Shown here in pieces: positions 3,221-24,250 of a stretch of DNA of 64,000 bases. This stretch comes from Macrostomum lignano (lineage: Eukaryota). The translations under genes and the position numbers were made by a program. The stretch spans positions 124,001 to 188,000 of the forward strand of contig NIVC01000566.1 of NCBI GenBank assembly GCA_002269645.1, given 5' to 3'. Each line of letters starts with the position of its first letter. The stretch's first letter is position 1. Below the pieces are notes generated by a model. The model ran no database searches. It saw only the letters and a list, made by a program, of their open reading frames with translations, and had not been told where the DNA came from.

Positions 3221-3295
3221 TTTAGTATTTTATTATAAGAATAAATTTTGTCTTATTTATACAGTACTAAGGGAATAATTTTTGCTTATCCACAT

Positions 3296-3592: not shown

Positions 3593-4079
3593 ATCCACAT
3601 GGCACACTAATATGGCAGACTAATATATTACCATAGTACTACAAGAATAGAAAAGAAATTATTCCTACTAAAGGATAAGCACTACCTTTTTACTCTCTAT
3701 ACTCCTAAAGATACTGTTTTTAGCAGAAATTCTCACATGCAACAAGGTCCTAAGCAGTCTAATACTACATGCATAGTGTGCATCAAGGAGTTTGCAACAT
3801 TTTTTGGCATGCTTACGCAATAGCACTACATATAAAAAGGTAAAAATGCATGGCACCATAGTCAGAGCTTTGCAGTAGGCCTAGCTATGCCACATAGAGA
3901 ATTTTTAATAGTTTAAAACATGATATGATAGTTGTTATTTTTGAAGTGAGTATTGTATTTAAACTGTAAAAGACATATAGATAATGTGTTATTACTAAAA
4001 TGCACTCATTGGATTTGATCCAACCTTCCTATGTGCCATAGTTTAGAAGGCAAAATATATACTGGGATTTCCTCATATA

Positions 4080-6255: not shown

Positions 6256-6611
6256 TTTTTATTAGAGGCAGGGGGTTGTGTGCACCTTGGTGCACTTTAA
6301 GCGACATAGGCACACAACCAAGAAAAGGCATTACTACACATTTGCCAACTCCCCTGAGCAGGCATACAAGCGCGTAGATATGTATGCAGGCATACATTCA
6401 CATAGGAGTATACAGTGGCCCTAACTTTATTTTATTGTTAGGCATGTACACTTCACTGTGCCTTGGGAAGTTGGCTCTTAAGGCCGTTAATTGCACGAGC
6501 AGAGCCAAGCCAAGATTCCAATTCAGCCCCAAATTAATGTGACTGCACTTGGAATCGAGCCTGGGTCGCTGGAACAATAGAGCCTGCGCTAGACCGCTGG
6601 GCTATGGCCCT
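6256..6611 (-). mobile_element. tRNA-derived SINE, family 1, copy 2
   Basis: Reverse-complement head AGGGCCATAGCCCAGCGGTCTAGCGC...GGCTCGATTCC. Body aligns with copies 1 and 3. Near-perfect flanking duplication GACTAT(T/C)ACCAT. Confidence 0.8.
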
Positions 6612-8892
6612 CTTGACTATCACCATTACCAAGCATCTAGTATCAGTCATGAATCATGATGCTTGACATTGTTGCTTCAAATGGCACTAAGATACCACCA
6701 GTGTAGTTGACCAAGGCAATAGACTTAGACTAGATGTAGCACGTTACAAGCAAATCCTAATCAGGAAAGTGCTATCTTAGAATATGAGATAGGGTACCTT
6801 TCCTTTATAATATGAAGTATTTTTCTTAATATATATGCTATGATTGTGATTTATTTTCTTAAAAATTCAATATTCAAATTCCCATCAACAGTAATAATTT
6901 TTATTTAAATTTTGTGAATTCAAATAATATTGCATGATATATTATATATCTTTTGAACAATACAAATAGAAGCCCAGAGCAGGCCAAGTAGAATCATCTC
7001 ATTGTGAGCTAGCAAATTTGCTTAGTATAATTAATATAATGGTTTTTATAGTAAAACCACTAATATTCAAGACTTATTCTTTTTCTTAGAAGTATCAAGT
7101 CCCATATTGGGAATATCAGAGATCCACTAGAAGTGAGAATCACCTCAGGGCAAGAAATTGCTAAAAGAATAAAATTGCCTTAGGGCAAGGAAAAGCACAT
7201 AAAGGCTATGACCTTCTAATCTTCAGAATGCCCAGGACTGAGAGAAAACTTCTATAAGACTCAAAAGTGAATAATAATAATAGACAGTGCCATTAGACTG
7301 CTTAGACCAAAAGTACAATACATATATATACATAATATGTATTGTGTATACATACATATTAGTATGTATGGTAGCATACATATATGTATATATGTATGCT
7401 ACCAATAGATAAATATATGCTACCTATACAAAAGTAGATAGGGAAGTAGTCATGCTATTAATAAAAATAAGTATATATGTAAAAGTACATTAATTAATAT
7501 CAATAGGAGAACATAGCAAATTAACCCTATAACAACTTAGTGACATTGCTAAGATTATTTTAAGGGATAGGAATAACCCCTACATCAACTTGGTATCAGC
7601 AATTGGGATTTTTTATAGAACCAAAAGGCCTGTTACAAATAGATATAGAGAATCTACCTAGATGAAAACTATGTTTCAACAAGATAGGGCACCTACATAC
7701 ATGGCAAATGTTGTGCAAAACTGGATGGAAGGCCACATGAAATTCTGGCCAAAAAAATTCTGGCTGCCACAAAGTTTAGATATCAATCCATTGGACTATA
7801 ATATCTGGTAGCATATCTCTAGCTAGGCCTGTACTATATGCCACCCAAATATAGTATGTAGACATTCTAAAGGCTGTTATTAATATAGCCTAAGCCACAA
7901 TAGACAAATAGTATATCATCAAGGTATGCTCTAGCTTCAAAGGTCATGTAGAGCAGGTCCTTAATGCTAAAGGCGGCTATATTGATTGAACACACTTGTT
8001 AAATATTATGTTAGGCCAATATTTGTATTGTTTTAGAAAGTTAGAAACTGAACAAATGAAGATATAATTATATTTCATAAAAAACTGCTTGACATTTTTT
8101 GCACAACCCAGTAGACTAAGGGGATGGGGAGCTCTTTGCTTTGCTATGTTAAATTACTTACTAGTATTGCATCTCTTGTTGCCTTCCATTAATTTATCAT
8201 ATAATATTATACCTCCTACCATTTCTTGCCTTTTGCCAAAATGCCTAGGCCTATGCGCTGCAATTAGGTCTCCTTAATTAGGTAATAATTTATTATTTCA
8301 AAATGTATTTTGGGAATTCTTAAAATTGGTTGCTAAGCTAAGTACAAATTTTAAGCCAAAAAAATATTGAACAAAAATGTAGGATTCTCACTCATAGTCA
8401 CTATGACTATGGCATATAGTATGCCATTTTTTAGATTTAAAAAATCTAACACTAAACTAGGCCTAAGGCTAGGCCTAACTTCTTGCATTTTTTGCATTAG
8501 GCCTGGGCCTTATGTCATCAAAATGACACATTTATTTGGAAGGAAAATAAGCCTGATTAAAAAATCAATTAAAAATTATCAATTACACAGTTCTTGTCAG
8601 AAACATTCAATTTAAACTTTTTATAGTATTTTCATTTTTAGTATATTCTGATACAGTACACTACAGCACAGGAATAATCATCTGATCTGAAATTTTGAAT
8701 AGTCAAAAAAGTAAAATATGAAATAGGCAAATAGCAAATTTTTTAAATGCAAATAAGACATTTGGGAAATACAATACAATAAATACAATTAATTATGCAA
8801 TACTTTTAGAGATTGTATAGAGATTGTAACATTTAAGGCTAGACTTATTAACTGGTTACGAATCTCTTTTTTGTTTGCTGCACAATTGATGA

Positions 8893-11800
8893 ACTAACTA
8901 CTGAATTCACCGGCTGTTGGGTTCACCGGATTTTTAACTTTATTTTTAAGGGTTGGAAATATATATAATCGATAGCGCAAGTAAAACTAGAGATGCGCCT
9001 AGATTTTTGGCTCTGCGCGTTGCCCCTGGACATCAGGAGGGCGATTTTTGTTATTTTTTGGGGGGTGAAACCGGCGGTGAACCCAATAAATCCTTCCAGA
9101 GAGCTGAAAACCTATCATGCAATATTTCAAAGCAAAATATAGGCAGATTTCGACGTGCGCATAAAATTTCAGCGTTGCGCGTTGCTCCTGAACTGCAGGA
9201 GAACGGTTTTTGTTAAATTCCGGTGGTGAATGACTGCCGCTGAACTCCGCGGTGAAGGAAATTAAGTGCGTTTCCCGAGTCGAAAAATAGTAAATTTTAC
9301 TTCTACAAAAGCTATCAAAGTAAAATTTTATCACTTTTATCAGCATTTTTGCATTCCCTTTTGTGTTGATTCTTAAGCTATTTATTTTAATGCAAAGCGA
9401 AAAAAGTTTTAAAAAAATTCGAACTACGAGTATTGAGTACTGCGTGCACGCGCAGGCGGCGGCAGATGGCTAGCACGTTGCAGGGCACTTGCTCACATCA
9501 AAGACAAAGCCAAAGTGTTGTGGTATTTTTGTGCACATACTTTTTAAAGCCTGTATTAATATAATATATTAAAGTAAAAACTTCTATTTCGATACATCTA
9601 TTTGGTCAAATTATATAGACATACAATATTTAAGATTCTATAGTTTCCATTAAATTTTATAATTGAATTAAGGGAGGCACCTATAGGCTATAGTATATTT
9701 ACTTTTATGCAAAATAGCAATTACCATGTAATAATATTGACCCTACACTGGCCATGTCAATATAATTACTTATAATTACCAATACTAGTCAATAAATATT
9801 TTTATATTTGATTTTATTGTAAATATATTTCTATAATAATAATCCATCCATATATAATAAATTTTACTCTTAAAATTCTTTTTCTTCTTTCTAACTGTAA
9901 TTGCTAATTGAAAATTAGAATATACCAAGAATTAGTATGGCTTAGTTTTGTAAATTAAAAAAAATTCTGTGCTTTCTAATATTGTGCATTCTTTATCATA
10001 ACACAAAATAATTTAAAATTGAAATTGCTAAATAGATAAGTAACATTTTGAAATTTGTATATATTAAAATTAGAGACTAATTTCAGGGGCATAGCTAGGA
10101 ATTTCCTATGGGAGGATACACCAAGGTGAAAGTGCTATGACAGAGTCACATGGTAGCATGTATAGCAACAAAGGGCAACAAAAAAGTTTTTGTCAGGCTC
10201 TTTAGGGGGTATATGGTATAGGACCAAGACCGCCATACTTGGGGGAGCTAAGGGGGAGGAATTTGGCTTGCCATGTTATTAGATGGTACTGAGAAGGGGT
10301 AAGATGGGGAGAGCTAGCAGGACAAGGCCGCAAGAGAAGAACTGGTGAGCAGGCCAGGTGGGTGAGTGAGCCAGGCTCCTCATTTTTTTTCATTCAATTT
10401 GAATTGTAAAGTAACAATGAGATATTGTTACAATTGCCCTGGTTGACTTGCAATCATTTTGGGCCACTTATTTGTCTTATTAGTGACTAATCTTGGGATG
10501 TTTCCTCCTTATCTAACTCCACAACCCATCACAACCAATAGCAATGCTGGAAGATTGGTAGCTCCCCCTCAATTCCAGTAGGCCTAGCCAATGAGAACTT
10601 ATTTTGCATTATAATATAGGAATGGCATAACTTATAAACTAGAATTACCAATGCAACAAAGGATCACTAAGACTAGACAAGTTGGTATGGCAATAGTGTC
10701 ACATTGAAGACTTATTGGTTGCCAATCTTGAATGCTCATTAGGAATTATATTTGTACCCAGAAACGCAATAGACACAATAAATTGTGTTTTTTGTGTTTC
10801 ATCAGTCTAGCCTGCTATTGAGCTATCTAGAAGCTGCACACTGATAGAATGCAATTTTTCTCAGGGATATTACTTCTTTCTAAGTTACAGGGACCAATAT
10901 GCTCATTAGGAATTATATTTGTACCCAGAAACACAATACACACAATAAACTGTGTTTTTTGTGTTTACATCAGTCTAGCCTGCTATTGAGCTATCTAGAA
11001 GCTGCACACTGATAGAATGCAATTTTTCTCAGGGATATTACTTCTTTCTAAGTTACAGGGACCAATATGCTCATTAGGAATTATATTTGTACCCAGAAAC
11101 ACAATACACACAATAAACTGTGTTTTTTGTGTTTACATCAGTCTAGCCTGCTATTGAGCTATCTAGAAGCTGCACACTGATAGAATGCAATTTTTCTCAG
11201 GGATATTACTTCTTTCTAAGTTACAGGGACCAATATGCTCATTAGGAATTATATTTGTACCCAGAAACACAATACACACAATAAATTGCGTTTTTTGTGT
11301 TTACATCAGTCTAGCCTGCTATTGAGCTATCTAGAAGCTGCACACTGATAGAATGCAATTTTTCTCAGGGATATTACTTCTTTCTAAGTTACAGGGACCA
11401 ATATGCTCATTAGGAATTATATTTGTACCCAGAAACACAATACACACAATAAATTGTGTTTTTTGTGTTTACATCAGTCTAGCCTGCTATTGAGCTATCT
11501 AGAAGCTGCACACTGATAGAATGCAATTTTTCTCAGGGATATTACTTCTTTCTAAGTTACAGGGACCAATATGCTCATTAGGAATTATATTTGTACCCAG
11601 AAACACAATACACACAATAAACTGTGTTTTTTGTGTTTACATCAGTCTAGCCTGCTATTGAGCTATCTAGAAGCTGCACACTGATAGAATGCAATTTTTC
11701 TCAGGGATATTACTTCTTTCTAAGTTACAGGGACCAATATGCTCATTAGGAATTATATTTGTACCCAGAAACACAATACACACAATAAATTGTGTTTTTT

Positions 11801-12810
11801 GTGTTTACATCAGTCTAGCCTGCTATTGAGCTATCTAGAAGCTGCACACTGATAGAATGCAATTTTTCTCAGGGATATTACTTCTTTCTAAGTTACAGGG
11901 ACCAATATGCTCATTAGGAATTATATTTGTACCCAGAAACACAATACACACAATAAATTGTGTTTTTTGTGTTTACATCAGTCTAGCCTGCTATTGAGCT
12001 ATCTAGAAGCTGCACACTGATAGAATGCAATTTTTCTCAGGGATATTACTTCTTTCTAAGTTACAGGGACCAATATGCTCATTAGGAATTATATTTGTAC
12101 CCAGAAACACAATACACACAATAAACTGTGTTTTTTGTGTTTACATCAGTCTAGCCTGCTATTGAGCTATCTAGAAGCTGCACACTGATAGAATGCAATT
12201 TTTCTCAGGGATATTACTTCTTTCTAAGTTACAGGGACCAATATGCTCATTAGGAATTATATTTGTACCCAGAAACACAATACACACAATAAATTGTGTT
12301 TTTTGTGTTTACATCAGTCTAGCCTGCTATTGAGCTATCTAGAAGCTGCACACTGATAGAATGCAATTTTTCTCAGGGATATTACTTCTTTCTAAGTTAC
12401 AGGGACCAATATGCTCATTAGGAATTATATTTGTACCCAGAAACACAATACACACAATAAACTGTGTTTTTTGTGTTTACATCAGTCTAGCCTGCTATTG
12501 AGCTATCTAGAAGCTGCACACTGATAGAATGCAATTTTTCTCAGGGATATTACTTCTTTCTAAGTTACAGGGACCAATATGCTCATTAGGAATTATATTT
12601 GTACCAGAAACACAATACACACAATAAATTGTGTTTTTTGTGTTTACATCAGTCTAGCCTGCTATTGAGCTATCTAGAAGCTGCACACTGATAGAATGCA
12701 ATTTTTCTCAGGGATATTACTTCTTTCTAAGTTACAGGGACCAATATACTCATTAGGAATTATATTTGTACCCAGAAACACAATACACACAATAAATTGT
12801 GTTTTTTGTG
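8893..12810 (+). repeat. Left terminal inverted repeat arm (~3.9 kb, including the satellite array)
   Basis: Reverse complement of 20831-24250. The identical spurious ORFs at 8953-9216/23927-24190, 8999-9346/23797-24144 and 10202-10393/22750-22941 confirm arm identity. Confidence 0.93.
10731..12810 (+). repeat. 168-bp tandem satellite array, ~12.4 units, in the left TIR
   Basis: The GCTCATTAGG marker recurs at 10734, 10901, 11069, 11237, 11405...12581 and 12748 (period 168; two units are 167). Units are near-identical, with AAATTG/AAACTG variants. Confidence 0.97.
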
Positions 12811-12957
12811 CTTTTTAAAGTGATTGGAAACTATTGAAAACTACTTAATTGCAGAATTCAAAACTAGGAAACATTGTCTATAGGTATATTTGTAATGATA
12901 TGGCCTCATTTCAATTAAAAGCACCGATTAACCTTTGAATATTATTTTTACATCGCT

Positions 12958-14919
12958 TTGCAATGCAATTTTCTTGCCTTTCAGCCATCTGCTAGTGACC
13001 GCGATCAGCATGTGCTTAAGGCACTGCAGGTTTTGTCTGAGTCGGTTTCTGTTTCTGATTTCTGCTCCGGCACTTCAAATTCAGTTTACTCTGCTCTGTT
13101 AAGCCAGTTAAATATACTTTATCCAGGCAATTATGGTGAAAAAGACTTAAAAACCGTTTGCTGTGATATTCAGCAAAACAGACGACAGTTGAAGAACAAA
13201 ATTTCACTGGTGTTAAATAAATCAACTAACGTGGTGCTGGAGACAGAAAAAAATTCTGATTCTGATTCAAGTCATGACAGTATTGTAATTTATGAATTGG
13301 ATGGCGTGTGGACTGCTCTTGAACAGGCTAGAAATGATAGCGATCGCTGTAAGGCCCAGGAAGACATGCGTTGCATGCTTTTAGCAAAAATCGAACTGGA
13401 TATCGTACAAAAGTGCAGTTTGAGTGTTCAGCGCAGTGATTTTTCAAATGATAGCGCTCGAACCGTCATTTACGTACTGAAATGCTCTGCGCCATTGTCC
13501 GAAGAACGCGGCGTTTGCCCAGGACGATGGAAAGTGCGAGTCAAAGGCTCCACTGTCAGCATAAAGTCTATCGAGACTCCTCAAGAACATCCTCTTAAGG
13601 CCGGAAGAGTTCGCGATAAAAGTCTAAAGCGTAAATTGCAGACCGGATCGATCGCCTCCTTACAGTCGTCTGTCGCTGCACATGCTTATGATGCTCGTGG
13701 CATGCCTTCTAGCAAAACATTGACAAACATTAGGCAGTACGAGAAAACAAAAGAGAGGATTTGCAAAGACAATGCTGCTCATGATCTGCTTCTTCGCATT
13801 GAACACTCCGAGACTCTATCCAAGTACGTTCAGTACTCACAATTTTCCGGCAATTCGTCGCTTCTCGTCATTTCGTTGTCTCATCCTCACTTGGTGGCGG
13901 ATGTTTTGTACTCTATGAAGAAGTCGAAAGTACCAATAAACCTAATAATCGACTCTACCGGTGCATCTGTGACTACAAGCAGCTGGCCTGGGATTCTTCC
14001 CAAAAAATTGTATCATTACGCACTGGTTCTGCCGTCAAGAGGCCAGCTTAATCAGGTTTCTTTGTTAGACGTGCTGTCATGCCTTCATGACAAAGTACAG
14101 CTGTCAATCATGTTGGCAAAGTGGTGGCGAGAAATACTGGGGGTACCAGGTTACGGCTGCTTTAGAATCGCTAAAATCGTGACAGACTTTAATTGGCCAA
14201 CTTTGCACGCTCTACTGCAAGTTTTTAACGGTTTAAACATCGAAGACTACATAAATTGGTGTTATCTTGTTGGCCTGCAAGATGACAATGGACAAAGAGG
14301 TATGCCAGGCTGGCTGCGCGCTACGTTGAAGCAGGCCCGTGAGCGAGTGGCTATCACACTCGGACGCAGCCATATAATGAACGAGGTCCGTCATTGGCCA
14401 GAAGTGCGAAACGCTAATCGACAAGTTCAGGCGGTGTATCTGCAGGGCTTCGCTAAAATCGTCGCAAGCACCTCTGCCCATGAAGGACGCATCTGGCTGC
14501 AAAATCTGCTGCACATCCTGCTGGAACGGGATGCTATGAAAGCCCTTGCATATGTTGAAAGAATACGGAGCGAGCAAGCAGCCGACTTAATGGATGCAGC
14601 ACTTTTGGATCGTTCCGACGAAGAGGATGATGAGAAATCAAGATCTACGATTCGTGCTTCCTCGCGTTTTTACCACGAAGCACGCGAATTCCTTCAAAGA
14701 ATATCCGTCGCTTGCCGTCAAGTTGCGCTGAATAGCGTGTTGATGCCTAATGCTTATTTGAACGAAGCGCTAGCTGCAAGATTTGTGGACTTGTATGCCT
14801 TTTTTCCGTTGTTTAGTAGCATGATGGAAAATGCAGAGCGACACTTTACCCGGAAAGCATCAGCTGTCGACTTCCGCAATACCGAAGGCAGCGTTGAAGT
14901 TTATCACCGGACTGTTTAG
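12958..14919 (+). CDS. MULE-family DDE transposase (NOF/Rehavkus-like), 5' ORF; true start uncertain
   Basis: C-x10-C...H zinc-finger-like segment (KCSAPLSEERGVCPGRW...QEHP). D1 in LIIDSTG (13951), D2 in IVTDFNWPTLHALLQVFN (14185), GRSH at the usual C/DxxH position (H 14371), catalytic E in TEGSVEVYH (14896). The stop TAG at 14917 falls 7 codons after E. The ORF call starts at a TTG. Confidence 0.85.
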   Translation: MQCNFLAFQPSASDRDQHVLKALQVLSESVSVSDFCSGTSNSVYSALLSQLNILYPGNYGEKDLKTVCCDIQQNRRQLKNKISLVLNKSTNVVLETEKNSDSDSSHDSIVIYELDGVWTALEQARNDSDRCKAQEDMRCMLLAKIELDIVQKCSLSVQRSDFSNDSARTVIYVLKCSAPLSEERGVCPGRWKVRVKGSTVSIKSIETPQEHPLKAGRVRDKSLKRKLQTGSIASLQSSVAAHAYDARGMPSSKTLTNIRQYEKTKERICKDNAAHDLLLRIEHSETLSKYVQYSQFSGNSSLLVISLSHPHLVADVLYSMKKSKVPINLIIDSTGASVTTSSWPGILPKKLYHYALVLPSRGQLNQVSLLDVLSCLHDKVQLSIMLAKWWREILGVPGYGCFRIAKIVTDFNWPTLHALLQVFNGLNIEDYINWCYLVGLQDDNGQRGMPGWLRATLKQARERVAITLGRSHIMNEVRHWPEVRNANRQVQAVYLQGFAKIVASTSAHEGRIWLQNLLHILLERDAMKALAYVERIRSEQAADLMDAALLDRSDEEDDEKSRSTIRASSRFYHEAREFLQRISVACRQVALNSVLMPNAYLNEALAARFVDLYAFFPLFSSMMENAERHFTRKASAVDFRNTEGSVEVYHRTV

Positions 14920-16903
14920 ACGGGATGTGCTTGGTGGCAGGTCACAAACTCTCATTGGATTTTTAACCTTAATGGAGGAATTTACGCGAGGGCGTCTTCG
15001 CTATCGATTAGCTAGAAACGATGTCAATTTACCTGCTGCTCAAGATATCGACTTAGATGCGTCCTCAACATCCGGCTCCGGCTCCGAGCACCTGTTGGGG
15101 ATGCAAGACGGTAACGCTGACGAAACTACTGACTGTTGCACGGATCGCTGTACTGGCTCTGTCAACGACCGTGATGGCGTGTCAGGTTCTTGCAGCCCCG
15201 TTAAACCTGATGCTGGTAGCAGCGCTAGTGAAGCTAATTATCGTCCTGAAGCCAGTTTTGAAGCTGATCGCAGCGTTGGTAGCGGAACTGATCGCCGAGC
15301 TGGTCGCGGCGCTGGTCGCGGCGCTGGTCGCGGCTCTGATAGCGGCGCTAGTTGCGAAACTGCTACCGGAATTGATTGCGGCTCTGGTCGCGGCACTGAT
15401 CGCCAAGCTGGTCGCGGCTTTGGTCGCGGCTCTGGTCGCGGCACTGATCGCCAAGCTGGTCGCGGCACTGATCACCAAACTGGTCGCGGCACTGATCACC
15501 AAACTGGTCGCGGCACTGATCACCGAGCTGGTCGCGGTTCTGATAGCGGCGCTAGTTGCGAAACTGCTACCAGCATTGATTGCGGCTCTGGTCGCGGCAC
15601 TGATCGCCAAGCTGGTCGCGGCTCTGGTCGCGGCACTGATCGCCAAGCTGGTCGCGGCACTGATCGCCAAGCTGGTCGCGGCACTGATCATCGAGCTGGT
15701 CGCGGCACTAATCACCAAGCTGGTCGCGGCACTGATCGCCAAGCTGGTCGCGGCGCTGGTAGCGGCGCTGGTCGCAGCGCAAACATTAGCATTAAACGTT
15801 GCTCCAAAACCGACGCTGATCGTGTCGACACTGCTAGAAATTCAAGTACCTCTAAGAGTGGGTCAGTTTTGACTCCAACCCGAAATGCATTTAATGATGA
15901 TTCTATCCAGGCATCTAGCAGCTCCGTGGAAAATAAGCGTCGGTCAAATTGCACAGCTCCAAAGTATTTTCCAGTCGGTAAATATTTTAGAAGTAGTCGA
16001 CCTGATGAAGAGCTTATTCGGAAACACCTACCAGGTGTACTGCTGGTAAACACGATTGTTGTGAAAGGTTACAGGGATTGGCCAGGACGTAATGAGCCCA
16101 TTGATGTTTATCTAAATGGTATGTGTGCTGTAAATCACGTCGTAATGGCAGTTGTTTTATTTCTGCGTCAGAATAATGCCGTAAGGGAGATGTTTAGGCT
16201 TCGATTCGGTGGCATTAGAATCGGCACATGCATTCTCCGATTGGTCGATGCTGCATCATTGCCAGAAGCTGAGACTGTTTTGCTCGATGCCATTTTAGGC
16301 TCTAACTACAGACTGCAATTTTTAAACAAGTGTGTCTTCATGGACTCGCATTCTGTACATGTTGACCACTCTCAAGGTGATGAACGTGAAGTAATTGAGC
16401 TAATGCTCTCGCCTATTCTCCAAAGCACTTTGCGAATGGCAGAGTGCTCCAACGGACACCGACACGAATTCGACTCGTTCAGATACGCGAAAGAATCACT
16501 GACGTTTCAAACAGAAGTCGAAAAGCGCACAATTGCAGACGTTATAGAGGCAGAATTTGTAAGACCGGAAGTTAAATTGTGCCCCTCCATCACTGAGCAG
16601 GGCACAGCGTGTCAAGAAGTTATGACAGTCGCTCCAAGACGGCCTTTTCCGTTGATTCTAATTTGGCCAGCGGTGGTTGGCACCGTAGATCACCTTCAAC
16701 CTGAAGTCCATGCCGGCGAAGTGCAATTCGTTCTGGCGGGAATAACGTATTATGCAAACGACCACTATCAACTACGACTACCGTTCAAGCATCACAACCA
16801 AGAAGTAGTCTACGACGACCGCATCAATGACAAAAATTGCCTTGGTCGAATTCCTGCAGGCGCAATTCCACATAGCGCTGTTTATTTTTCTAGCGCCACG
16901 TAA
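14918..16903 (+). CDS. C-terminal continuation of the transposase in the +1 frame: RG-rich repeat linker plus USP-like (peptidase C19-order Cys-His-Asp) domain
   Basis: Frame of ORF 14831-16903. RRDVLGGRSQTLIGFLTLMEEFTRGRL continues naturally from EVYHRTV. Then (AGRGTDRQ)n, followed by LNGMCAVN (Cys 16124), the Cys/His pairs ECSNGH and CPSITEQGTAC, and FVLAGITYYANDHY (His 16763)...VVYDD (Asp 16814). Confidence 0.7.
   Translation, partial: RRDVLGGRSQTLIGFLTLMEEFTRGRLRYRLARNDVNLPAAQDIDLDASSTSGSGSEHLLGMQDGNADETTDCCTDRCTGSVNDRDGVSGSCSPVKPDAGSSASEANYRPEASFEADRSVGSGTDRRAGRGAGRGAGRGSDSGASCETATGIDCGSGRGTDRQAGRGFGRGSGRGTDRQAGRGTDHQTGRGTDHQTGRGTDHRAGRGSDSGASCETATSIDCGSGRGTDRQAGRGSGRGTDRQAGRGTDRQAGRGTDHRAGRGTNHQAGRGTDRQAGRGAGSGAGRSANISIKRCSKTDADRVDTARNSSTSKSGSVLTPTRNAFNDDSIQASSSSVENKRRSNCTAPKYFPVGKYFRSSRPDEELIRKHLPGVLLVNTIVVKGYRDWPGRNEPIDVYLNGMCAVNHVVMAVVLFLRQNNAVREMFRLRFGGIRIGTCILRLVDAASLPEAETVLLDAILGSNYRLQFLNKCVFMDSHSVHVDHSQGDEREVIELMLSPILQSTLRMAECSNGHRHEFDSFRYAKESLTFQTEVEKRTIADVIEAEFVRPEVKLCPSITEQGTACQEVMTVAPRRPFPLILIWPAVVGTVDHLQPEVHAGEVQFVLAGITYYANDHYQLRLPFKHHNQEVVYDDRINDKNCLGRIPAGAIPHSAVYFSSAT
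15290..15780 (+). repeat. Coding 12/24-bp minisatellite (GCTGGTCGCGGC ACTGATCGCCAA) with a higher-order duplicated block
   Basis: Encodes AGRG/TDRQ repeats. The block SDSGASCETAT(G/S)IDCGSGRGTDRQ occurs twice. Confidence 0.9.
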
Positions 16904-17220
16904 AACTTTAGCTTGTACTCGTATTAGCGCTATTTTGATACTTAGTCCGGTTTACACATTCTTGGACATAACCTTGATTTGGACACGGAGTTTAAAAAAA
17001 TCAGGAGCAGTTTTAATCGATTTACAAGTCTAGTAAAAAAAGTACCGTTTCTTAGTTGTCAAGTTATGTTATGCTCTCAGATTATTTTAATATGCTCGAG
17101 GAGTCGTCAATTGACAATTAGTGCGTATTATTATTGTTAGTCTTGATCTTATCCTTTTATTTCCTTTAGCTCTCACAGTGGGCTTTAAACCCAAGCGTGT
17201 CTTGCGGCTTCATTTAATTA

Positions 17221-18240
17221 TCTACCATATATTATAGTCAAGTCATATCACACATGCAGTGCGCTGTGCTCTTTTTTACCTTTGGACTAATTGCTCATGT
17301 TGGATCGTGTTTTGAAAACTTTCTTGACGCGTTGTCTTGCCTAACACACAGAAGTACATGTACATACGTACGAGCACTACCTACCTACCGTAATACAATT
17401 CCCATAGCTACATGCAAAAGTCTTAGTGTTAGGCAAGTACGAGCCTTTTGAATTTGTTTTGCAACCCGCAGTTTGTTTGCGTTGCTAACTGCCTTTCTAC
17501 CATATATCCTATCAGACGCCAAATTAGTCAATCTTTTTTCTCGCCGTTATCCTTTGCAAGTAGTTCGTTTTTTCTTTTCTTTTAATTTTGAGACCTTTGT
17601 ACTGTTCAGAAGCTTGAGTTTTACAGATGTACGTGTAAATTGAAAGGGTAATTATCACCACGTTTTTTAGTATATAAGACAGACAAATCTTAGACATTTA
17701 GTATAGTTTGATATTTTCAACTTTTGTATATTAGAAGATTGTGACTAGCCATCCGAGCCCTAAATAAAACAAATTGAAAAAAAAATGAATGAGTACCTTT
17801 AGGTTTTGCATCCACTATGAAAGGCAGCTATTTAGCTAGCAGAATATATCAATCAGATCCCTATGATCCCTATTTTGGCTCAAACGTCTGAGAAACCTAA
17901 ATTAGCCACAGAAGTTAGTAACTCCCTCTAGGATGGTTACAACAATTTTTTATATATCCAGATATACGTCGTACTCTTATATTCAGTTGCCAATATCGAG
18001 GGCTCAGACTTTGTTTTTTTAAAATATACGTAAAATACGAGCGTATCTTCGACAATTTTTAATGTTCGTTTTAGTTACATGCCTAAAATTTCTTGTCTCC
18101 ATTTTCTTTTCTTAGGACAAAGCCCTCAACAAAAGCAAAAATCACTTTGGCTTGAAGGCTTTATTTGGCCGTCTTTTTGATCTTGTAGGGAGCCAGAGAT
18201 TCTATCTAGATGCCCCCCATCGGGGGGCGAAAATTGCTAG
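17221..18240 (+). mobile_element. Probable non-autonomous Helitron (~1.0 kb) nested in the transposon spacer
   Basis: 3' end: hairpin GCCCCCC-ATC-GGGGGGC (18212-18228), 8 nt, then CTAG (18237-18240) followed by T. Candidate 5' end A|TCTACCATATATTATA at 17220/17221. The 5' boundary is inferred. Confidence 0.55.
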
Positions 18241-19170
18241 TTTCTCTTCTAAATAAATAATGTCAAATTAGCCAGCGACCCAGAGGTCTGTTTTCGCATT
18301 CTCTCAACAAGAGAAAATCAATTGGGTCGTAACAATTCAATTACATGAGTTATCATAGCTATCATATTATCATAATATCATAATAGTATTATCATATACT
18401 GTAGAATTCAGTAATAAAAAGTAGATTATTAATAGCCGCTTTGCAAAATGTTAAAACATAACAAAATTAAAGAGCAACCCACCATGAAAATACGGCTCGT
18501 AATAATTGTGTTCATACATGTACATATTTATTACATTTGTCTACGTATACATTATCAACGGCAAAAAACTATAAGATTGAAAAAAGTAACGCTTATCCAT
18601 TACACAAAAATACAGATAAAACAGCCAGCCAGGGATAAAACAAACAGCAGATTAAATATACAGATACGGATAGATGAGTAATAGATCAGGATGACAAAAT
18701 TTATCGCACATATAACTTTGTTTATAATTAAGCCAGAAACACATGTAGCGCAACACTGCTACATGTATTGCTGGCATGAGAGAGCCATTTTTCGTGTATA
18801 GATGATAGCTACTAGGCCTCACGAGTGGGTCACGGCTGCATAAAATCCGTAAAAATACTTCAACTTACTGATTTTCAATTTGCACTGTAAACTTTTCGGA
18901 ACAAAATCCATCTAAGCTTAAGATTCTTTGGTGCATAAAGAATCAAATATTAAAAGGTCCTGCTAATATTTCTGGTCCGGTTCTGGTCCTGCTGCTAATA
19001 TTTCTGGTCCGGTGATTACAAGCAGACGAGAAAGCAATGAGATATAAATTAGTCTTTAATAATGGAATTTAAATAAAGAAAATTATAAAGCAAAAATCAA
19101 CTTGCACAACTTGTAAACTCAAGCATTCGACTTCAGTTCAGTTAAAAAGAAGCGTTAGCTAGTCCGAAAA

Positions 19171-20571
19171 TCATTTTTTCTCTATTAATTTACATTCAGT
19201 TCTGCGAAGTTTCGTATTATTGGAACTTCTCAGAACTATGGCACTTTTTTCACGGAATTTATTAGAATTTTCTCCTCGTCGTCTTTTCATCGGAGCTATT
19301 TCAATATCAGTCTCGGCCTCCCTTCGAGCAGTCTCCTCGGCCTGCCTTCGAGCCGTCTCCTCGGCCTGCCTTTGAGCCGTCTCCTCGGCCTGCCTTCGAG
19401 CCGTCTCCTCGGCCTTCCTTCGAGCCGTCTCCTCGGCCTGCCTTCGAGCCGTCTCCTCGGCCTGCCTTCGAGCCGTCTCCTCGGCCTGCCTTCGAGCCGT
19501 CTCCTCGGCCTGCCTTCGAGCCGTCTCCTCGGCCTGCCTTCGAGCCGTCTCCTCGGCCTCTTTTCGAGCCGTCTCCTCGGCCTGCCTTCGAGCCGTCTCC
19601 TCGGCCTGCCTTTGAGCCGTCTCCTCGGCCTGCCTTCGAGCCGTCTCCTCGGCCTGCCTTCGAGCCGTCTCCTCGGCCTGCCTTCGAGCCGTCTCCTCAG
19701 CCTGCCTTCGAGCCGTCTCCTCGGCCTGCCTTCGAGCCGTCTCTTCGGCCTCTTTTCGAGCCGTCTCCTTGGCCTTCCTTCGAGCCGTCTCCTCGGCCTG
19801 CCTTCGAGCCGTCTCCTCGGCCTGCCTTCGAGCCGTCTCCTCGGCCTGCCTTCGAGCCGTCTCCTCGGCCTGCCTTCGAGCCGTCTCCTCGGCCTCTTTT
19901 CGAGCCGTCTCCTCGGCCTGCCTTCGAGCCGTCTCCTCGGCCTGCCTTCGAACCGTCTCCTCAGCTTCCATTCTACTTGACTCCTCTTCGATTGAAGCAT
20001 CAGAAAAAACTTCATCATCCACGATATCCAGATCATTTTCAGATCGACACATTCGTTCTAACTCGCTCTTAAGGTGGCGTAGAGAAGGAAGCAATATTTC
20101 TATTGATAGCCGCCACTTGGCTGATGCCAACGAAGCTGCACTCTCTACATGCTCTAATGCAAAACTTAAGTGCTTGGCTGCCGTTACGTTGCTCCGATAA
20201 TTAAATTGCTTAGAACGCTGCCAATTGTGGCCTTCAAGCCAGGCGCGGCCAGCTTCAGCAGCACTTGAACGTTTTGAAGAATCCAGCCGCAACTCGGCGC
20301 GTTTTCTTTTACGAAAAATTGCAATGCCATTAACATAAGCTAAAGATATACCACCTTCAGATATGTACTTCACGTTCGAACCTCGCGCAGTTCGAATCGC
20401 AGATTTAAGCTTTAAATCAAGAAGGTTTGCCGCATCACGAACATCCAGAGCTTTTACTTTGATACCGACCACAACATCAGTGTCCGGATAGTCATCAGGC
20501 AATGAACCTTGAGCTTCAAAAACCACGAAAGGATCGTTGATAAACGCCAGAAAAGACAAAGTTAGGGCCAT
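19171..20571 (-). CDS. Second transposon-borne protein (466 aa): ~200-aa unknown N-terminal domain, ~27x RRQAEETA charged helical repeat, basic C-terminal tail
   Basis: Uninterrupted ATG-to-stop ORF inside the TIRs, convergent with the transposase. Non-repetitive coding-like flanks on both sides of the repeat; NLS-like KRRR near the C-terminus. Confidence 0.75.
   Translation of the reverse strand: MALTLSFLAFINDPFVVFEAQGSLPDDYPDTDVVVGIKVKALDVRDAANLLDLKLKSAIRTARGSNVKYISEGGISLAYVNGIAIFRKRKRAELRLDSSKRSSAAEAGRAWLEGHNWQRSKQFNYRSNVTAAKHLSFALEHVESAASLASAKWRLSIEILLPSLRHLKSELERMCRSENDLDIVDDEVFSDASIEEESSRMEAEETVRRQAEETARRQAEETARKEAEETARRQAEETARRQAEETARRQAEETARRQAEETARRKAKETARKEAEETARRQAEETARRQAEETARRQAEETARRQAEETARRQAEETAQRQAEETARRQAEETARKEAEETARRQAEETARRQAEETARRQAEETARRQAEETARRQAEETARRKAEETARRQAEETAQRQAEETARRQAEETARREAETDIEIAPMKRRRGENSNKFREKSAIVLRSSNNTKLRRTECKLIEKK
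19320..19966 (-). repeat. Coding 24-bp minisatellite (~27 units)
   Basis: Plus-strand unit CCTGCCTTCGAGCCGTCTCCTCGG repeated with few variants. Confidence 0.97.
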
Positions 20572-20830
20572 TCAAGTAAGGCCATAATCTGGTAAATTAA
20601 ATATAACATTTTTCCTAGTTTCTCATGGTGTAATTGAGCAAGTTACATTGTAGAACAAAAAGAACAATCTAATATGTGCACCGTGTTTTGTTACTTTGCA
20701 GCTAATTTTATAAGAGTTCATTGGCCTGATTAAAATGAGGCCTTACTAATAGGCACACTGCATATAAAACTTCCTTCCTCGTCTTCATTTCTGTAATTAA
20801 GCATGTTACAATCTAGAAGACACAGTTTTT

Positions 20831-22412
20831 TGTAAACACAAAAACACAATTTATTGTGTGTATTGTGTTTCTGGGTACAAATATAATTCCTAATGAGCAT
20901 ATTGGTCCCTGTAACTTAGAAAGAAGTAATATCCCTGAGAAAAATTGCATTCTATCAGTGTGCAGCTTCTAGATAGCTCAATAGCAGGCTAGACTGATGT
21001 AAACACAAAAAACACAATTTATTGTGTGTATTGTGTTTCTGGGTACAAATATAATTCCTAATGAGCATATTGGTCCCTGTAACTTAGAAAGAAGTAATAT
21101 CCCTGAGAAAAATTGCATTCTATCAGTGTGCAGCTTCTAGATAGCTCAATAGCAGGCTAGACTGATGTAAACACAAAAAACACAATTTATTGTGTGTATT
21201 GTGTTTCTGGGTACAAATATAATTCCTAATGAGCATATTGGTCCCTGTAACTTAGAAAGAAGTAATATCCCTGAGAAAAATTGCATTCTATCAGTGTGCA
21301 GCTTCTAGATAGCTCAATAGCAGGCTAGACTGATGTAAACACAAAAAACACAATTTATTGTGTCTATTGTGTTTCTGGGTACAAATATAATTCCTAATGA
21401 GCATATTGGTCCCTGTAACTTAGAAAGAAGTAATATCCCTGAGAAAAATTGCATTCTATCAGTGTGCAGCTTCTAGATAGCTCAATAGCAGGCTAGACTG
21501 ATGTAAACACAAAAAACACAATTTATTGTGTGTATTGTGTTTCTGGGTACAAATATAATTCCTAATGAGCATATTGGTCCCTGTAACTTAGAAAGAAGTA
21601 ATATCCCTGAGAAAAATTGCATTCTATCAGTGTGCAGCTTCTAGATAGCTCAATAGCAGGCTAGACTGATGTAAACACAAAAAACACAGTTTATTGTGTG
21701 TATTGTGTTTCTGGGTACAAATATAATTCCTAATGAGCATATTGGTCCCTGTAACTTAGAAAGAAGTAATATCCCTGAGAAAAATTGCATTCTATCAGTG
21801 TGCAGCTTCTAGATAGCTCAATAGCAGGCTAGACTGATGTAAACACAAAAAACACAATTTATTGTGTGTATTGTGTTTCTGGGTACAAATATAATTCCTA
21901 ATGAGCATATTGGTCCCTGTAACTTAGAAAGAAGTAATATCCCTGAGAAAAATTGCATTCTATCAGTGTGCAGCTTCTAGATAGCTCAATAGCAGGCTAG
22001 ACTGATGTAAACACAAAAAACACAATTTATTGTGTGTATTGTGTTTCTGGGTACAAATATAATTCCTAATGAGCATATTGGTCCCTGTAACTTAGAAAGA
22101 AGTAATATCCCTGAGAAAAATTGCATTCTATCAGTGTGCAGCTTCTAGATAGCTCAATAGCAGGCTAGACTGATGTAAACACAAAAAACACAGTTTATTG
22201 TGTGTATTGTGTTTCTGGGTACAAATATAATTCCTAATGAGCATATTGGTCCCTGTAACTTAGAAAGAAGTAATATCCCTGAGAAAAATTGCATTCTATC
22301 AGTGTGCAGCTTCTAGATAGCTCAATAGCAGGCTAGACTGATGAAACACAAAAAACACAATTTATTGTGTCTATTGCGTTTCTGGGTACAAATATAATTC
22401 CTAATGAGCATT
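20831..22412 (-). repeat. 168-bp tandem satellite array, ~9.4 units, in the right TIR (inverted)
   Basis: Reverse-complement marker recurs at 20898, 21066...22242 and 22409. Confidence 0.97.
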
Positions 22413-24250
22413 CAAGATTGGCAACCAATAAGTCTTCAATGTGACACTATTGCCATACCAACTTGTCTAGTCTTAGTGATCCTTTGTTGCATTGGTAATT
22501 CTAGTTTATAAGTTATGCCATTCCTATATTATAATGCAAAATAAGTTCTCATTGGCTAGGCCTACTGGAATTGAGGGGGAGCTACCAATCTTCCAGCATT
22601 GCTATTGGTTGTGATGGGTTGTGGAGTTAGATAAGGAGGAAACATCCCAAGATTAGTCACTAATAAGACAAATAAGTGGCCCAAAATGATTGCAAGTCAA
22701 CCAGGGCAATTGTAACAATATCTCATTGTTACTTTACAATTCAAATTGAATGAAAAAAAATGAGGAGCCTGGCTCACTCACCCACCTGGCCTGCTCACCA
22801 GTTCTTCTCTTGCGGCCTTGTCCTGCTAGCTCTCCCCATCTTACCCCTTCTCAGTACCATCTAATAACATGGCAAGCCAAATTCCTCCCCCTTAGCTCCC
22901 CCAAGTATGGCGGTCTTGGTCCTATACCATATACCCCCTAAAGAGCCTGACAAAAACTTTTTTGTTGCCCTTTGTTGCTATACATGCTACCATGTGACTC
23001 TGTCATAGCACTTTCACCTTGGTGTATCCTCCCATAGGAAATTCCTAGCTATGCCCCTGAAATTAGTCTCTAATTTTAATATATACAAATTTCAAAATGT
23101 TACTTATCTATTTAGCAATTTCAATTTTAAATTATTTTGTGTTATGATAAAGAATGCACAATATTAGAAAGCACAGAATTTTTTTTAATTTACAAAACTA
23201 AGCCATACTAATTCTTGGTATATTCTAATTTTCAATTAGCAATTACAGTTAGAAAGAAGAAAAAGAATTTTAAGAGTAAAATTTATTATATATGGATGGA
23301 TTATTATTATAGAAATATATTTACAATAAAATCAAATATAAAAATATTTATTGACTAGTATTGGTAATTATAAGTAATTATATTGACATGGCCAGTGTAG
23401 GGTCAATATTATTACATGGTAATTGCTATTTTGCATAAAAGTAAATATACTATAGCCTATAGGTGCCTCCCTTAATTCAATTATAAAATTTAATGGAAAC
23501 TATAGAATCTTAAATATTGTATGTCTATATAATTTGACCAAATAGATGTATCGAAATAGAAGTTTTTACTTTAATATATTATATTAATACAGGCTTTAAA
23601 AAGTATGTGCACAAAAATACCACAACACTTTGGCTTTGTCTTTGATGTGAGCAAGTGCCCTGCAACGTGCTAGCCATCTGCCGCCGCCTGCGCGTGCACG
23701 CAGTACTCAATACTCGTAGTTCGAATTTTTTTAAAACTTTTTTCGCTTTGCATTAAAATAAATAGCTTAAGAATCAACACAAAAGGGAATGCAAAAATGC
23801 TGATAAAAGTGATAAAATTTTACTTTGATAGCTTTTGTAGAAGTAAAATTTACTATTTTTCGACTCGGGAAACGCACTTAATTTCCTTCACCGCGGAGTT
23901 CAGCGGCAGTCATTCACCACCGGAATTTAACAAAAACCGTTCTCCTGCAGTTCAGGAGCAACGCGCAACGCTGAAATTTTATGCGCACGTCGAAATCTGC
24001 CTATATTTTGCTTTGAAATATTGCATGATAGGTTTTCAGCTCTCTGGAAGGATTTATTGGGTTCACCGCCGGTTTCACCCCCCAAAAAATAACAAAAATC
24101 GCCCTCCTGATGTCCAGGGGCAACGCGCAGAGCCAAAAATCTAGGCGCATCTCTAGTTTTACTTGCGCTATCGATTATATATATTTCCAACCCTTAAAAA
24201 TAAAGTTAAAAATCCGGTGAACCCAACAGCCGGTGAATTCAGTAGTTAGT
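20831..24250 (-). repeat. Right terminal inverted repeat arm (~3.4 kb)
   Basis: Reverse complement of the left arm. About 500 bp shorter, which is accounted for by three fewer 168-bp units. Confidence 0.93.

Follow-up and report, generated by a model that had tools for sequence, protein, structure and literature searches.

The segment at positions 8893-24250 of the window (the whole 64-kb stretch of Macrostomum lignano DNA that was analysed) is very probably a cut-and-paste DNA transposon of the Rehavkus group, within the Mutator/MULE superfamily in the broad sense, and belongs to a family that has moved recently. The element, 15.4 kb in length, holds two convergent genes between long inverted arms that end inwardly in satellite arrays. 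Its nature as a genuine mobile element is confirmed by its presence at several loci, by an internal-deletion derivative and by the target-site duplications (TSDs) that are proper to each copy.

Structure of the element

The termini are exact and a perfect 9-bp duplication, AATTGATGA, lies on both flanks (Table 1), as a sequence-only reading of this DNA had already stated. The inverted arms (8893-12303 against 20840-24250) pair along 3,411 nt; an exact count finds 6 mismatches, all of which fall within the arrays, while the outer unique part is identical and free of indels over 1,839 nt, in agreement with the earlier figure of ~1.85 kb. The 168-bp arrays at the inner ends of both arms were likewise recovered, and inverted matching of the left array reaches 12813. 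The description of this satellite as nucleosome-length is not general, the unit of the sister family L003 being 89 bp. The left terminus begins with ACTAACTACTG..., similar to the ACTGACATG... of L003, and contains TTCACCGG twice (8906-8913 and 8922-8929), a motif that is confined to the two element termini within the window. It had been claimed that two convergent ORF units start inside the arrays, and the positions hold: the plus-strand frame is open from 12919 with a TTG at 12958, ~105-145 bp inside the left array, and the ATG of gene B at 20571 is 260 bp inside the right one. The plus unit of the window copy, however, is two overlapping ORFs (12958-14919 and 14831-16903), being frameshifted. 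In the spacer between the convergent stop codons, no ORF of at least 100 aa and no Rfam family was found.

Table 1. Features of the element and its flanks, in positions of the window.
Feature	Position	Strand	Details
Left target-site duplication	8884-8892	.	AATTGATGA; identical to 24251-24259, read from letters
Left arm, unique outer part	8893-10731	+	1,839 nt, exact reverse complement of 22412-24250
Left subterminal array	10732-12813	+	168-bp unit, 12.4 copies; TRF (10732-12810) score 4081, 99% matches; units aligned
Gene A 5' part (ORF1), Rehavkus-type DDE transposase	12919-14916	+	Rehavkus-only HMM and hhalign
Candidate SL trans-splice acceptor	12984/12985	+	TTTCAG/CCA; inferred via PMC8629364
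Possible zinc finger of ORF1		+	C176/C187/H211; C-X3-10-C ... H pattern
Catalytic residues of ORF1	13951-13953; 14185-14187; 14371-14373; 14896-14898	+	D332; D410; H472 (GxxH); E647
T run (TTT) with 1-bp insertion	14914-14916	+	divides gene A between ORF1 and ORF2, within the catalytic-E helix
Gene A 3' part (ORF2 frame)	14918-16903	+	
Linker repeat	15264-15780	+	24 bp (GRGTDRQA); TRF
USP-like cysteine-protease domain, C-terminal (probable)	~16028-16900	+	C432 16124-16126; H645 16763-16765; D662 16814-16816
AT-rich spacer between convergent stop codons	16904-19170	.	99.8% identical in copy L002
Gene B (partner)	19171-20571	-	466 aa; ORF list
Right subterminal array	20831-22411	-	168-bp unit, 9.4 copies; TRF score 3113, 99% matches
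Right arm, unique outer part	22412-24250	-	exact reverse complement of 8893-10731; end ...CAGTAGTTAGT
Right target-site duplication	24251-24259	.	AATTGATGA

Coding capacity of the two convergent genes

All four positions of the catalytic motif are present in ORF1. Its residues 155-204 form four beta strands in the AF2 model, at a pLDDT below 50, and its first ATG does not occur before residue ~147; a spliced-leader account of the start codon does not fit the sister family L003. At the frameshift site the window reads GTTTAG and the paralog L001 reads GTTAG, and the frame is uninterrupted in P0001 and in all distant relatives. On comparison of these copies, ORF1 and ORF2 are one gene, split in the window copy by a 1-bp T insertion, and the ancestral gene A is a single ORF of ~1,314 aa comprising a transposase, a linker with repeats and, at its C-terminus, a Cys/His/Asp-box domain. 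The transposase-protease fusion that had been proposed is thus a single gene in relatives, interrupted by the 1-bp frameshift in the window copy. As assembled, the window copy is not autonomous: since the frameshift lies in the catalytic-E helix and an ATG is missing, either the copy is truly non-autonomous or the T run contains a homopolymer sequencing error, and its autonomy is unproven.

The C-terminus of gene A is probably, on moderate evidence from profile and fold comparisons, a USP-like, not a Ulp1-like, cysteine protease throughout the family. The domain, which also bears zinc-ribbon cysteines, is kept in P0016, P0041, P0011, P0013, P0021, L006 and L008, and its Cys, His and Asp show little or no variation among relatives that are only 14-20% identical to the window domain. 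It was seen too in environmental sequences and in relatives nearer to canonical Rehavkus. A PDB profile search with the domain returned USPs in 12 of 12 matches (best E=0.0095), Pfam UCH matched P0016 under its cut-off (E=0.0085), and the best Foldseek matches were USP folds, with an AF2 query model of pLDDT 48. These E-values are marginal (0.0085-0.1), and a richer profile gave no better PDB matches. No Pfam family reached threshold for ORF1 or ORF2, where no match to a PHD finger, nor any other, was obtained at E<=1, and no PHD finger was found in 25 relatives.

Gene B consists of a conserved N-terminal domain of ~170 aa, charged repeats and a basic tail (KRRRG...). The repeats comprise 27 units of the 8-aa AEETARRQ (aa 202-418, nt 19318-19968) and are composed of E (27%), A (24%) and R (23%). 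By sequence comparison it is a conserved convergent second gene, for which no prior description was found in the literature. Its N-terminus is 46% identical to the convergent partner ORF of L003 (E=2e-43), and it had no Pfam or PDB match. Since it has no recognisable domain and was absent beside the environmental relatives examined, having been detected in M. lignano elements alone, a role for its product can purely be inferred.

Gene B could alternatively be a captured or exchanged host-derived module in the style of Pack-MULEs, and the "USP" domain an inactive structural or zinc-binding module, such as the PHD finger of others, a combination that we regard as unlikely. The restriction of gene B to M. 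lignano would fit such an origin, and its higher identity between families than that of the transposase (~25%) could mean recent inter-family exchange; the marginal scores and poor model of the USP domain leave room for the second part, and Rehavkus has been tabulated with one ORF and a PHD finger (PMC6446971). This is opposed by the position, orientation, domain order and open frame of gene B, which are common to two divergent families and the deletion derivative, by a near-invariant Cys/His/Asp despite the low domain identity, and by three independent searches that yielded USPs almost exclusively.

Other copies and the evolution of the arms

The search for more copies in the host assembly (GCA_002269645.1), as recommended in the sequence-only reading, returned L001, which is an old, degraded left half, together with two elements, located on contigs of M. 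lignano other than that of the window, that share the layout and are each flanked by a perfect 9-bp duplication, GTGTGCATG for L002 and CAATCTTCA for L003. Because these two elements share the layout with TSDs of their own, the arrangement is neither due to chance nor an assembly artefact. L002 is 99.4-99.8% identical to the window copy and lacks 13016-15548, with 2-bp microhomology at the deletion junction. L003 represents a sister family, whose transposase is only ~25% identical to that of the window family; its arms measure 2,164 nt, its 89-bp arrays hold 14.7 and 8.2 units, and of its two convergent genes the transposase-USP gene contains a repeat in the linker and the partner gene another repeat of its own. 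An exhaustive protein search added ~30 relatives in environmental assemblies. No empty sites, transcripts or excision events were observed.

Over the unique arm (1,839 nt), the window copy and L002 show 6 differences that are all mirrored in both arms, and 1 difference that is found on a single arm. A mutation originates in a single arm, so that mirrored states require arm-to-arm homogenisation; evolution of the arms is concerted, and their identity consequently overstates the youth of the insertion. That arm identity results from a very recent insertion only, without concerted evolution, is quite improbable: the near-identity of the copies does indicate that the family is young, but it is the mirroring of the 6 differences in each copy, with 1 that is arm-specific, that speaks for homogenisation. 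Of the earlier view of a young, near-autonomous element, the recent activity of the family is therefore retained, while the copy is frameshifted as assembled and its arm identity is partly a matter of concerted evolution.

Classification of the transposase

A Rehavkus-only HMM built from six published Rehavkus DDE domains matched ORF1 with E=6.2e-21 (Z=1e6), and the HMM of the window family in turn matched 6/6 Rehavkus domains (E=4e-30 to 2.5e-60). Comparison of both by hhalign gave a probability of 100% and E=3.7e-49 across an alignment of 296 columns, in which the D/D/xxH/E positions coincide. The locus had been described as a foldback two-gene Mutator-superfamily element, with Rehavkus as a comparator, and these profile tests carry that description into the Rehavkus group itself. 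DDE homology, the 9-bp TSD and inverted termini with unequal subterminal arrays were all found, while the PHD finger and the single ORF were not, a second conserved gene being present in two M. lignano families. At the fold level, the AF2 core model of the transposase matches RAG1, Hermes, a bracovirus protein (E=2e-8) and ISCth4 of the IS256 family (E=0.021, probability 0.80, a similarity of fold alone), and the modelled likeness to Hermes and RAG1 is one shared in general by DDE enzymes that carry a helical insertion domain. No NCBIfam transposase match, IS256/Transposase_mut included, was obtained in 25 members. The TSDs of hAT, P and Transib elements measure 8, 7-8 and 5 bp, respectively; foldback elements of these superfamilies (e.g. 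Galileo) were ruled out by the 9-bp TSD and by the absence of such Pfam matches in any member.

It is very unlikely that the element is a canonical Mutator/Phantom MULE, or an FB element of the Drosophila type, instead of a Rehavkus one. The 9-bp TSD and long TIRs would suit either, sub-threshold matches to Pfam MULE PF10551 (cut-off 27.6 bits) occur in 2/25 relatives, with E=0.0021 and 0.033, Phantom elements may carry FB-like TIRs, as Tm1 does (PMC3169594), and the closest viral protein by fold comes from a polydnavirus, Phantom having been reported from insect viruses, with the identification of O92526 as Phantom being putative. PF10551 nevertheless stays under its cut-off in all 25 members and does not match the window protein or the family consensus, whereas the Rehavkus-only profile aligns end to end with ORF1, and Pfam gave no match to a WRKY-GCM1-type zinc finger (FLYWCH, SWIM, FAR1). 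In ORF1 the second D and the E lie ~237 aa apart, on either side of a large helical insert, a greater distance than in canonical MULEs. The rule that a 9-bp TSD and a C/DxxH motif define MULEs was too loose, as the window copy has GxxH and PF10551 is at best sub-threshold. Finally, two further readings are effectively refuted, namely that a chimeric, palindromic long read produced the structure during assembly, or that the host duplicated a segment in inverted orientation on both sides of a pair of ordinary genes. In their favour, the arms match almost perfectly for several kb, inverted chimeras are possible in long-read assemblies and M. lignano is a duplication-rich hidden polyploid (PMC10468722). 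Against them, three elements at unrelated loci have precise termini and each a different perfect 9-bp duplication, the array copy numbers are unequal between arms, the 8.5-kb centre is non-palindromic and the transposase is homologous to Rehavkus.

Comparison with known systems

The Rehavkus examples in Repbase include Rehavkus-1_TC and -3_TC (Tribolium) and Rehavkus-1_HR (Helobdella), in a group classed either within the MULE superfamily or as its sister. To our knowledge, it is among the least studied Mutator branches, represented almost only by Repbase consensus sequences and mainly used as an outgroup. Its termini are defined as a TIR plus variable subterminal tandem repeats (PMC12581902), with a 9-bp TSD and, in Rehavkus-1_TC, a 164-bp satellite (PMC6446971; PMC12581902; PMC10218199). 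Rehavkus elements thus resemble the window element in TSD, homologous DDE domain, unequal subterminal repeat numbers and large size (5-18.5 kb), the arrays of Rehavkus-1_TC having 5 and 8 units of 164 bp compared with 12.4 and 9.4 of 168 bp here. Since satellite-bearing termini and a 9-bp TSD are already Rehavkus traits, the architecture is not new. The reported hosts are Arthropoda and Annelida, in contrast to a flatworm here; the motif is CxxH, in contrast to GxxH in the window subfamily; and one ORF with a reported PHD finger is replaced by a convergent second gene, with PHD undetected. The USP-like C-terminal domain is unmentioned in the Rehavkus literature examined, a comparison made by DDE domains and published descriptions. 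The suggested novelty of the family accordingly narrows to the flatworm host, the USP-like domain and the partner gene, none of which was found described.

Maize MuDR has convergent genes between long TIRs, a 9-bp TSD and deletion derivatives, to which the window element appears analogous, including gene starts just inside the TIR. MuDR differs in its TIRs of ~215 bp, without satellite arrays, in having no known protease domain, and in that MURA matches Pfam MULE, unlike the window transposase. Ulp1 is found in plant KI-MULEs. VTD and OTU domains occur in Helitrons/Helentrons (PMC9741609) and OTU in MuDR-6_HM (Dupeyron Table 1). These transposons likewise encode a protease domain of papain fold directed at ubiquitin or ubiquitin-like proteins, but the USP-like domain would be of another DUB class (Cys box ... 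His box ... Asp, zinc-ribbon cysteines), here fused to a Rehavkus-type DDE transposase. Tm1 of root-knot nematodes, with a Phantom transposase and FB-like TIRs, and Tetris of Drosophila virilis, with ~220-bp repeats within its TIRs, share composite TIRs, repeat numbers unequal between ends and TSDs of 8-10 bp, mostly 9 (PMC3169594; PMC4079207). Tm1 differs by its 14-bp repeats, Phantom/FLYWCH-type transposase and TIRs averaging 93% identity, Tetris by having no known autonomous copy, and no protease domain or partner gene is reported for either.

Proposed mechanism and significance

We propose that the transposase would bind the terminal TTCACCGG pair, and probably the 168-bp repeats too, via its N-terminal C..C..H region. 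Excision would proceed by DDE chemistry, with Muta1 as a model, a MULE for which it has reportedly been shown, and reinsertion would involve a 9-bp staggered cut. The arrays may add transposase-binding sites and thereby raise the frequency of excision. The identical arms may also act as inward promoters for both convergent genes, in the manner of the MuDR TIRs, which are the promoters of mudrA and mudrB. It can be envisaged that the USP-like domain frees the transposase, or host factors present where excision occurs, of ubiquitin or a ubiquitin-like modifier, and that the gene B product is a nuclear accessory protein forming a long charged helical spacer. A wider proposal, which we put forward tentatively and consider rather doubtful, is that the USP-like domain is an active, integral DUB/Ubl protease of Rehavkus-type transposases generally and gene B a rod-like ER/K-helix cofactor of multi-kb repeat arms, which would jointly constitute an unrecognised three-component system (DDE, DUB and spacer protein) in which homogenisation linked to transposition keeps the arms identical.

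M. lignano is a laboratory model in which transgenesis is established. The element at this locus is almost intact and has very recent relatives in such a model, which makes Rehavkus biochemistry, satellite-bearing termini and the birth of satellites from transposon arms experimentally approachable, and it widens the host range of Rehavkus to Platyhelminthes. The mirrored arm substitutions offer a clean, small case of concerted evolution within a transposon and call for caution in dating by TIR identity. If true, the fusion of USP and DDE would be a new class beside the Ulp1, OTU and VTD ubiquitin-pathway enzymes borne by transposons, and the conserved gene B would be the first accessory factor of the Rehavkus group.

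Structure and mobility of the element

The structure described by the sequence-only reading, with its termini, 9-bp target-site duplication (TSD), indel-free arms, 168-bp arrays and convergent coding units, was reproduced in full, except that the plus-strand unit consists of two overlapping frames and not of one. By exact count the arms differ at six positions, every one within the tandem arrays, and their unique outer 1,839 nt are identical and indel-free; unit alignment placed the same private variants in the outermost 168-bp unit of both arrays. The TTCACCGG pair is found at each element end and nowhere else in the 64-kb window, and an Rfam search of the element gave no match.

Features of the window element and in-frame repeats of the related L003 element (window positions unless a contig is named)
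Feature	Position	Strand	Details
Inverted arms	8893-12303 and 20840-24250		3,411 nt, rounded to 100% complementary; inverted-repeat search
TSD AATTGATGA	8884-8892 and 24251-24259		flanks the element
Left 168-bp array	10732-12810		12.4 copies, 99% matches; Tandem Repeats Finder
Right 168-bp array	20831-22411		9.4 copies, 99% matches; Tandem Repeats Finder
ORF1 open frame	12919-14916	+	TTG at 12958
ORF2 frame	14831-16903	+	overlaps ORF1
GRGTDRQA repeat, 24-bp	15264-15780		in frame, transposase-protease linker
Gene B ORF	20571-19171	-	ATG-initiated
AEETARRQ repeat, 24-bp	19312-19962		in frame, gene B after N-terminal domain
L003 63-bp and 18-bp repeats	L003:12070-12329 and 15117-15404		in frame, transposase linker and partner gene

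Close protein homologues obtained by word-seeded searches were M. lignano hypothetical proteins only, and the profile version of the homology search returned the same M. lignano paralogue only. A plaice protein was rejected as a homologue, having matched the low-complexity GRGTDRQ repeat only. An exact-protein look-up with the flanking ORF and gene B, seeking an empty site or other copies, found no identical protein on record. The contigs of the homologues, fetched from assembly GCA_002269645.1, provided three informative loci (L001, L002 and L003). A second copy with both arms lies at L002:6724-18360; its identity to the window copy is 99.4-99.8%, a perfect 9-bp TSD of its own (GTGTGCATG) flanks it, and the segment corresponding to window 13016-15548 is cleanly missing, with 2-bp microhomology at the deletion junction. 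This copy is a deletion derivative, and its junction is as expected of abortive gap repair. L001 carries an old, degraded left half of the element (94-97% identical). The L003 element belongs to a different family, whose transposase is only ~25% identical but whose plan is the same: termini ACTGACATG... (against ACTAACTAC... in the window), a 9-bp TSD (CAATCTTCA), arms of 2,164 nt with three mismatches, 89-bp arrays at the inner arm ends (14.7 and 8.2 copies), a plus-strand transposase gene with a 63-bp repeat in the linker, and a convergent minus-strand gene with an 18-bp coding repeat. The perfect 9-bp TSDs, different at each of three unrelated loci, rule out a chance structure, a chimeric assembly and a segmental duplication of the host; the window element is a mobile element and not an artefact, and its outline as a foldback-type transposon had been correctly interpreted. 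At L002:19949-21359 on the minus strand, 1.6 kb beyond the right end of the L002 element, lies a transposase of yet another Rehavkus-like family, the third, which shares 49% identity with ORF1, so that M. lignano harbours at least three diverged Rehavkus-like lineages.

Assignment of the transposase

Pfam searches with ORF1, ORF2 and ORF3 gave nothing or repeat-driven matches only (Cornifin, MAP7), the family consensus matched no transposon family in Pfam, no IS256-type match was found in NCBIfam, and the Pfam MULE domain (PF10551) was matched in only two of 25 family members, both below threshold. V-ATPase matches, the sole output of a PDB sequence search with the transposase profile, were spurious. 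The family alignment displays the motifs xDATG, IVTDFNWPxxHA, G/C-x-x-H and TE..VE.W...K. The AlphaFold model built from it has a confident core (residues ~290-650; mean pLDDT 64.7), the best PDB matches of which are RAG1, Hermes and the IS256-family ISCth4, all DDE enzymes carrying an inserted helical domain; the best viral match of the model is an uncharacterised bracovirus protein (O92526, E=2e-8).

On the basis of sequence comparison, the window transposase belongs to the Rehavkus group, a branch of the Mutator/MULE superfamily, and the decisive evidence is its relationship to the six Rehavkus DDE domains in the supplement of Dupeyron et al. 2019 (PMC6446971). An HMM built from these six domains alone matched window ORF1 at E=6.2e-21 (81 bits, Z=1e6), the family HMM covered all six end to end (E=4e-30 to 2.5e-60), and hhalign of the family against Rehavkus gave 100% probability (E=3.7e-49, 296 columns). 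Residues D332, D410, H472 and E647 align with the Rehavkus D, D, (C)xxH and E columns; CxxH is kept in more distant members, as in Rehavkus, and reads GRSH in the Macrostomum subfamily.

One transposase relative, P0045 (MES9881301.1), has a database entry as a MAG protein of 'Sedimenticola sp.', and others, on the environmental contigs L004-L008, adjoin genes for reverse transcriptase and DDE_3. Metagenomic contigs of eukaryotic origin, one of which was assigned to the wrong bin, are the probable source. Neither long inverted repeats nor a partner gene were seen on L004-L008, which may be too short to show the architecture.

Gene A and its C-terminal domain

The proposed fusion of the transposase with a putative protease domain is a single gene in L001 and the relatives, but the window copy is split by an extra T. 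The ORF1/ORF2 junction reads GTTTAG in the window against GTTAG in L001, whose product is uninterrupted there (...EVYHRTVRRDVLGG...). An exhaustive HMMER search yielded 34 proteins at E<=1e-3, the distant relatives being continuous across the junction; all are built alike, an N-terminal region being followed by the DDE core, by a linker of low complexity or of repeats, and finally by a C-terminal domain in which Cys and His boxes are present. The read-through in L001 and the continuity of the relatives together indicate an ancestral gene A product of ~1,314 aa. The extra T lies in a homopolymer, inside the helix bearing the catalytic E, and the transposase of the window copy is broken as assembled. 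It could also be a homopolymer sequencing error, since a separate T5/T6 difference occurs in L001, 40 bp downstream. The first ~147 residues of ORF1 include no ATG; TTTCAG/CCA at 12984/12985 matches the acceptor motif for trans-splicing in M. lignano, [T/C]TNCAG, and the 35-nt spliced leader of this species ends in ATG (PMC8629364). We tentatively suggest that a spliced-leader ATG might provide, in frame, the ORF1 start codon; the same logic fails for L003, where the corresponding acceptor and the annotated ATG would lie in different frames.

A fold of the ubiquitin-specific-protease (USP) class is likely for the C-terminal domain of gene A. Relatives 14-20% identical to the window domain conserve a Cys in an N-T-C-x-[VL]-D-type box, mid-domain paired cysteines (zinc-ribbon-like) and Y-x-L-x(2)-T-Y...G-H-Y...Y-D-[DG]. 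The relative P0016 has a Pfam UCH match (E=0.0085), and all 12 PDB matches of a five-sequence profile are USPs (best E=0.0095), with the His box aligned. The AlphaFold model of the domain is poor (pLDDT 48); its Foldseek matches are nevertheless almost all USP folds, namely USP15 (probability 0.96), USP54, USP12, USPL1, Sad1 and PAN2, together with USP4, USP8, USP2, USP7 and CYLD. The PDB E-values were no better with a richer USP alignment, which let in spurious lectin and antibody matches. The N-terminal half of the domain is also present in P0019, P0045 and P0046, relatives nearer to canonical Rehavkus, and the domain lies 3' of the transposase ORF on the environmental contigs L004-L006 and L008.

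The convergent partner gene

In the 466-aa product of gene B, a ~170-aa N-terminal domain precedes a 217-residue stretch of AEETARRQ repeats (E 27%, A 24%, R 23%), and the tail is basic; the ER/K-type composition of the repeat can reasonably be read as that of a single-alpha-helix or coiled-coil "rod". The N-terminal domain has no Pfam or PDB match, and no gene B homologue was found beside the environmental transposase relatives. The L003 partner is 46% identical to gene B over 166 aa (E=2e-43), its conserved domain being followed by a different charged repeat (ELEKQR) and then by a basic tail. The maintenance of position, orientation and domain order between elements whose transposases are ~25% identical argues for a function, and the higher conservation of gene B could equally reflect exchange between families. 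The coding repeats are unrelated in sequence between the window and L003 families, their positions being conserved in both genes.

Homogenisation of the arms and subterminal repeats

Comparison of the window and L002 copies over the 1,839 nt of unique arm sequence gave six differences, five of them substitutions and the other an indel; at all six, the two arms of each copy carry the same state, and one further site differs in a single arm only. Since mutations arise on one arm and the differences are mirrored, the arms have been homogenised, whether through arm-to-arm conversion or in the course of transposition or repair. The age of the insertion therefore cannot be read from arm identity, but a divergence of 0.2-0.6% from copy to copy still points to recent activity. 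The 168-bp unit and the otherwise unrelated L003 89-bp unit have a 31-nt stretch in common (window 10768-10798; ATACACACAATAAATTGTGTTTTTTGTGTTT versus ATAAACATGATAATTCATGTTTTTCATGTTT), 22/31 identical, in the same orientation and with an imperfect palindrome inside. At p ~0.04 by shuffling this is only a lead, and the stretch may be a conserved protein-binding module.

Genomic neighbourhood

An unrelated dispersed repeat lies 2.3 kb left of the insertion site (6258-6576; 89.7% identical over 320 nt to L001:17340-17659). A Q-rich ORF of 835 aa (28629-31136, plus strand) contains a 42-bp in-frame tandem repeat at 29268-29753 (QGFQQDQQGFQQKH), and its end weakly matches a P-loop domain (AAA_16, E=0.007). 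It probably represents a host-gene exon, ~4.4 kb away from the insertion. Perfect local direct duplications (31913-32212 and 34966-35265, 300 nt; 34702-34967 and 35692-35957, 266 nt) repeat at 35007 the start of an ORF at 31954-32784 (MDGRYEYDAE...), and represent a recent tandem segmental duplication of ~3 kb in a gene-rich, 50%-GC stretch. Further tandem or low-complexity arrays occupy 33480-34073, 44755-45102, 51075-51217 and 61300-62516, their types being a 14-bp unit x42 (STTANLPPSIYH-like reading), a 24-bp unit x14.5 (96% identity), and CT-rich and GA-rich microsatellite tracts; the L003 element, too, directly adjoins a GA-rich tract of this kind (L003:18447-19146). A perfect 322-nt inverted repeat (L003:1515-1836 and 5082-5403) surrounds a 679-aa ORF (2404-4443) with no Pfam match and no similarity to the Rehavkus-like profile, and this is probably another uncharacterised M. 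lignano TIR transposon.

Proposed mechanism and relation to known systems

We propose that the transposase would recognise the element termini and probably the subterminal repeats too; in foldback-type elements, more repeats are reported to raise transposase binding and excision (Liu & Wessler 2017, as cited in PMC12581902). DDE catalysis would excise the element, the MULE Muta1 being reported to excise via hairpins on flanking DNA (PMC5499845), and reinsertion would proceed with a 9-bp stagger. The USP-like domain may oppose the attachment of ubiquitin or a ubiquitin-like modifier to the transposase or to factors of chromatin and repair, and gene B may encode a nuclear accessory factor. The TIRs of MuDR act as promoters and, by analogy, the identical arms, which face inward to both genes, could plausibly do so.

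Rehavkus elements are listed as single-ORF elements of arthropod and annelid hosts that have 9-bp TSDs, a minisatellite and a PHD finger (PMC6446971); their termini sometimes exceed 11 kb, and the 164-bp satellite of Rehavkus-1_TC forms one array of five monomers and another of eight (PMC12581902, PMC10218199). With multi-kb arms that bear satellites, arrays of unequal length, a 9-bp TSD and a large size, the window element is thus textbook Rehavkus in these respects. Membership of this group means that the headline architecture is already known, and the novelty is narrower than the suggestion of an undescribed family implied; Tm1, a Phantom transposase within FB-like TIRs (PMC3169594), and Tetris (PMC4079207) are precedents. 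Nor is the 'nucleosome-length' satellite unit special, since the sister family in L003 uses 89 bp. In the research articles consulted, as distinct from Repbase and Dfam entries, no mention was found of Rehavkus elements in flatworms, or of any with a protease domain or a second gene. Its host among the flatworms, its USP-like module and a partner gene conserved between families set the element apart and make it worth a specialist's attention, but not as a new kind of element.
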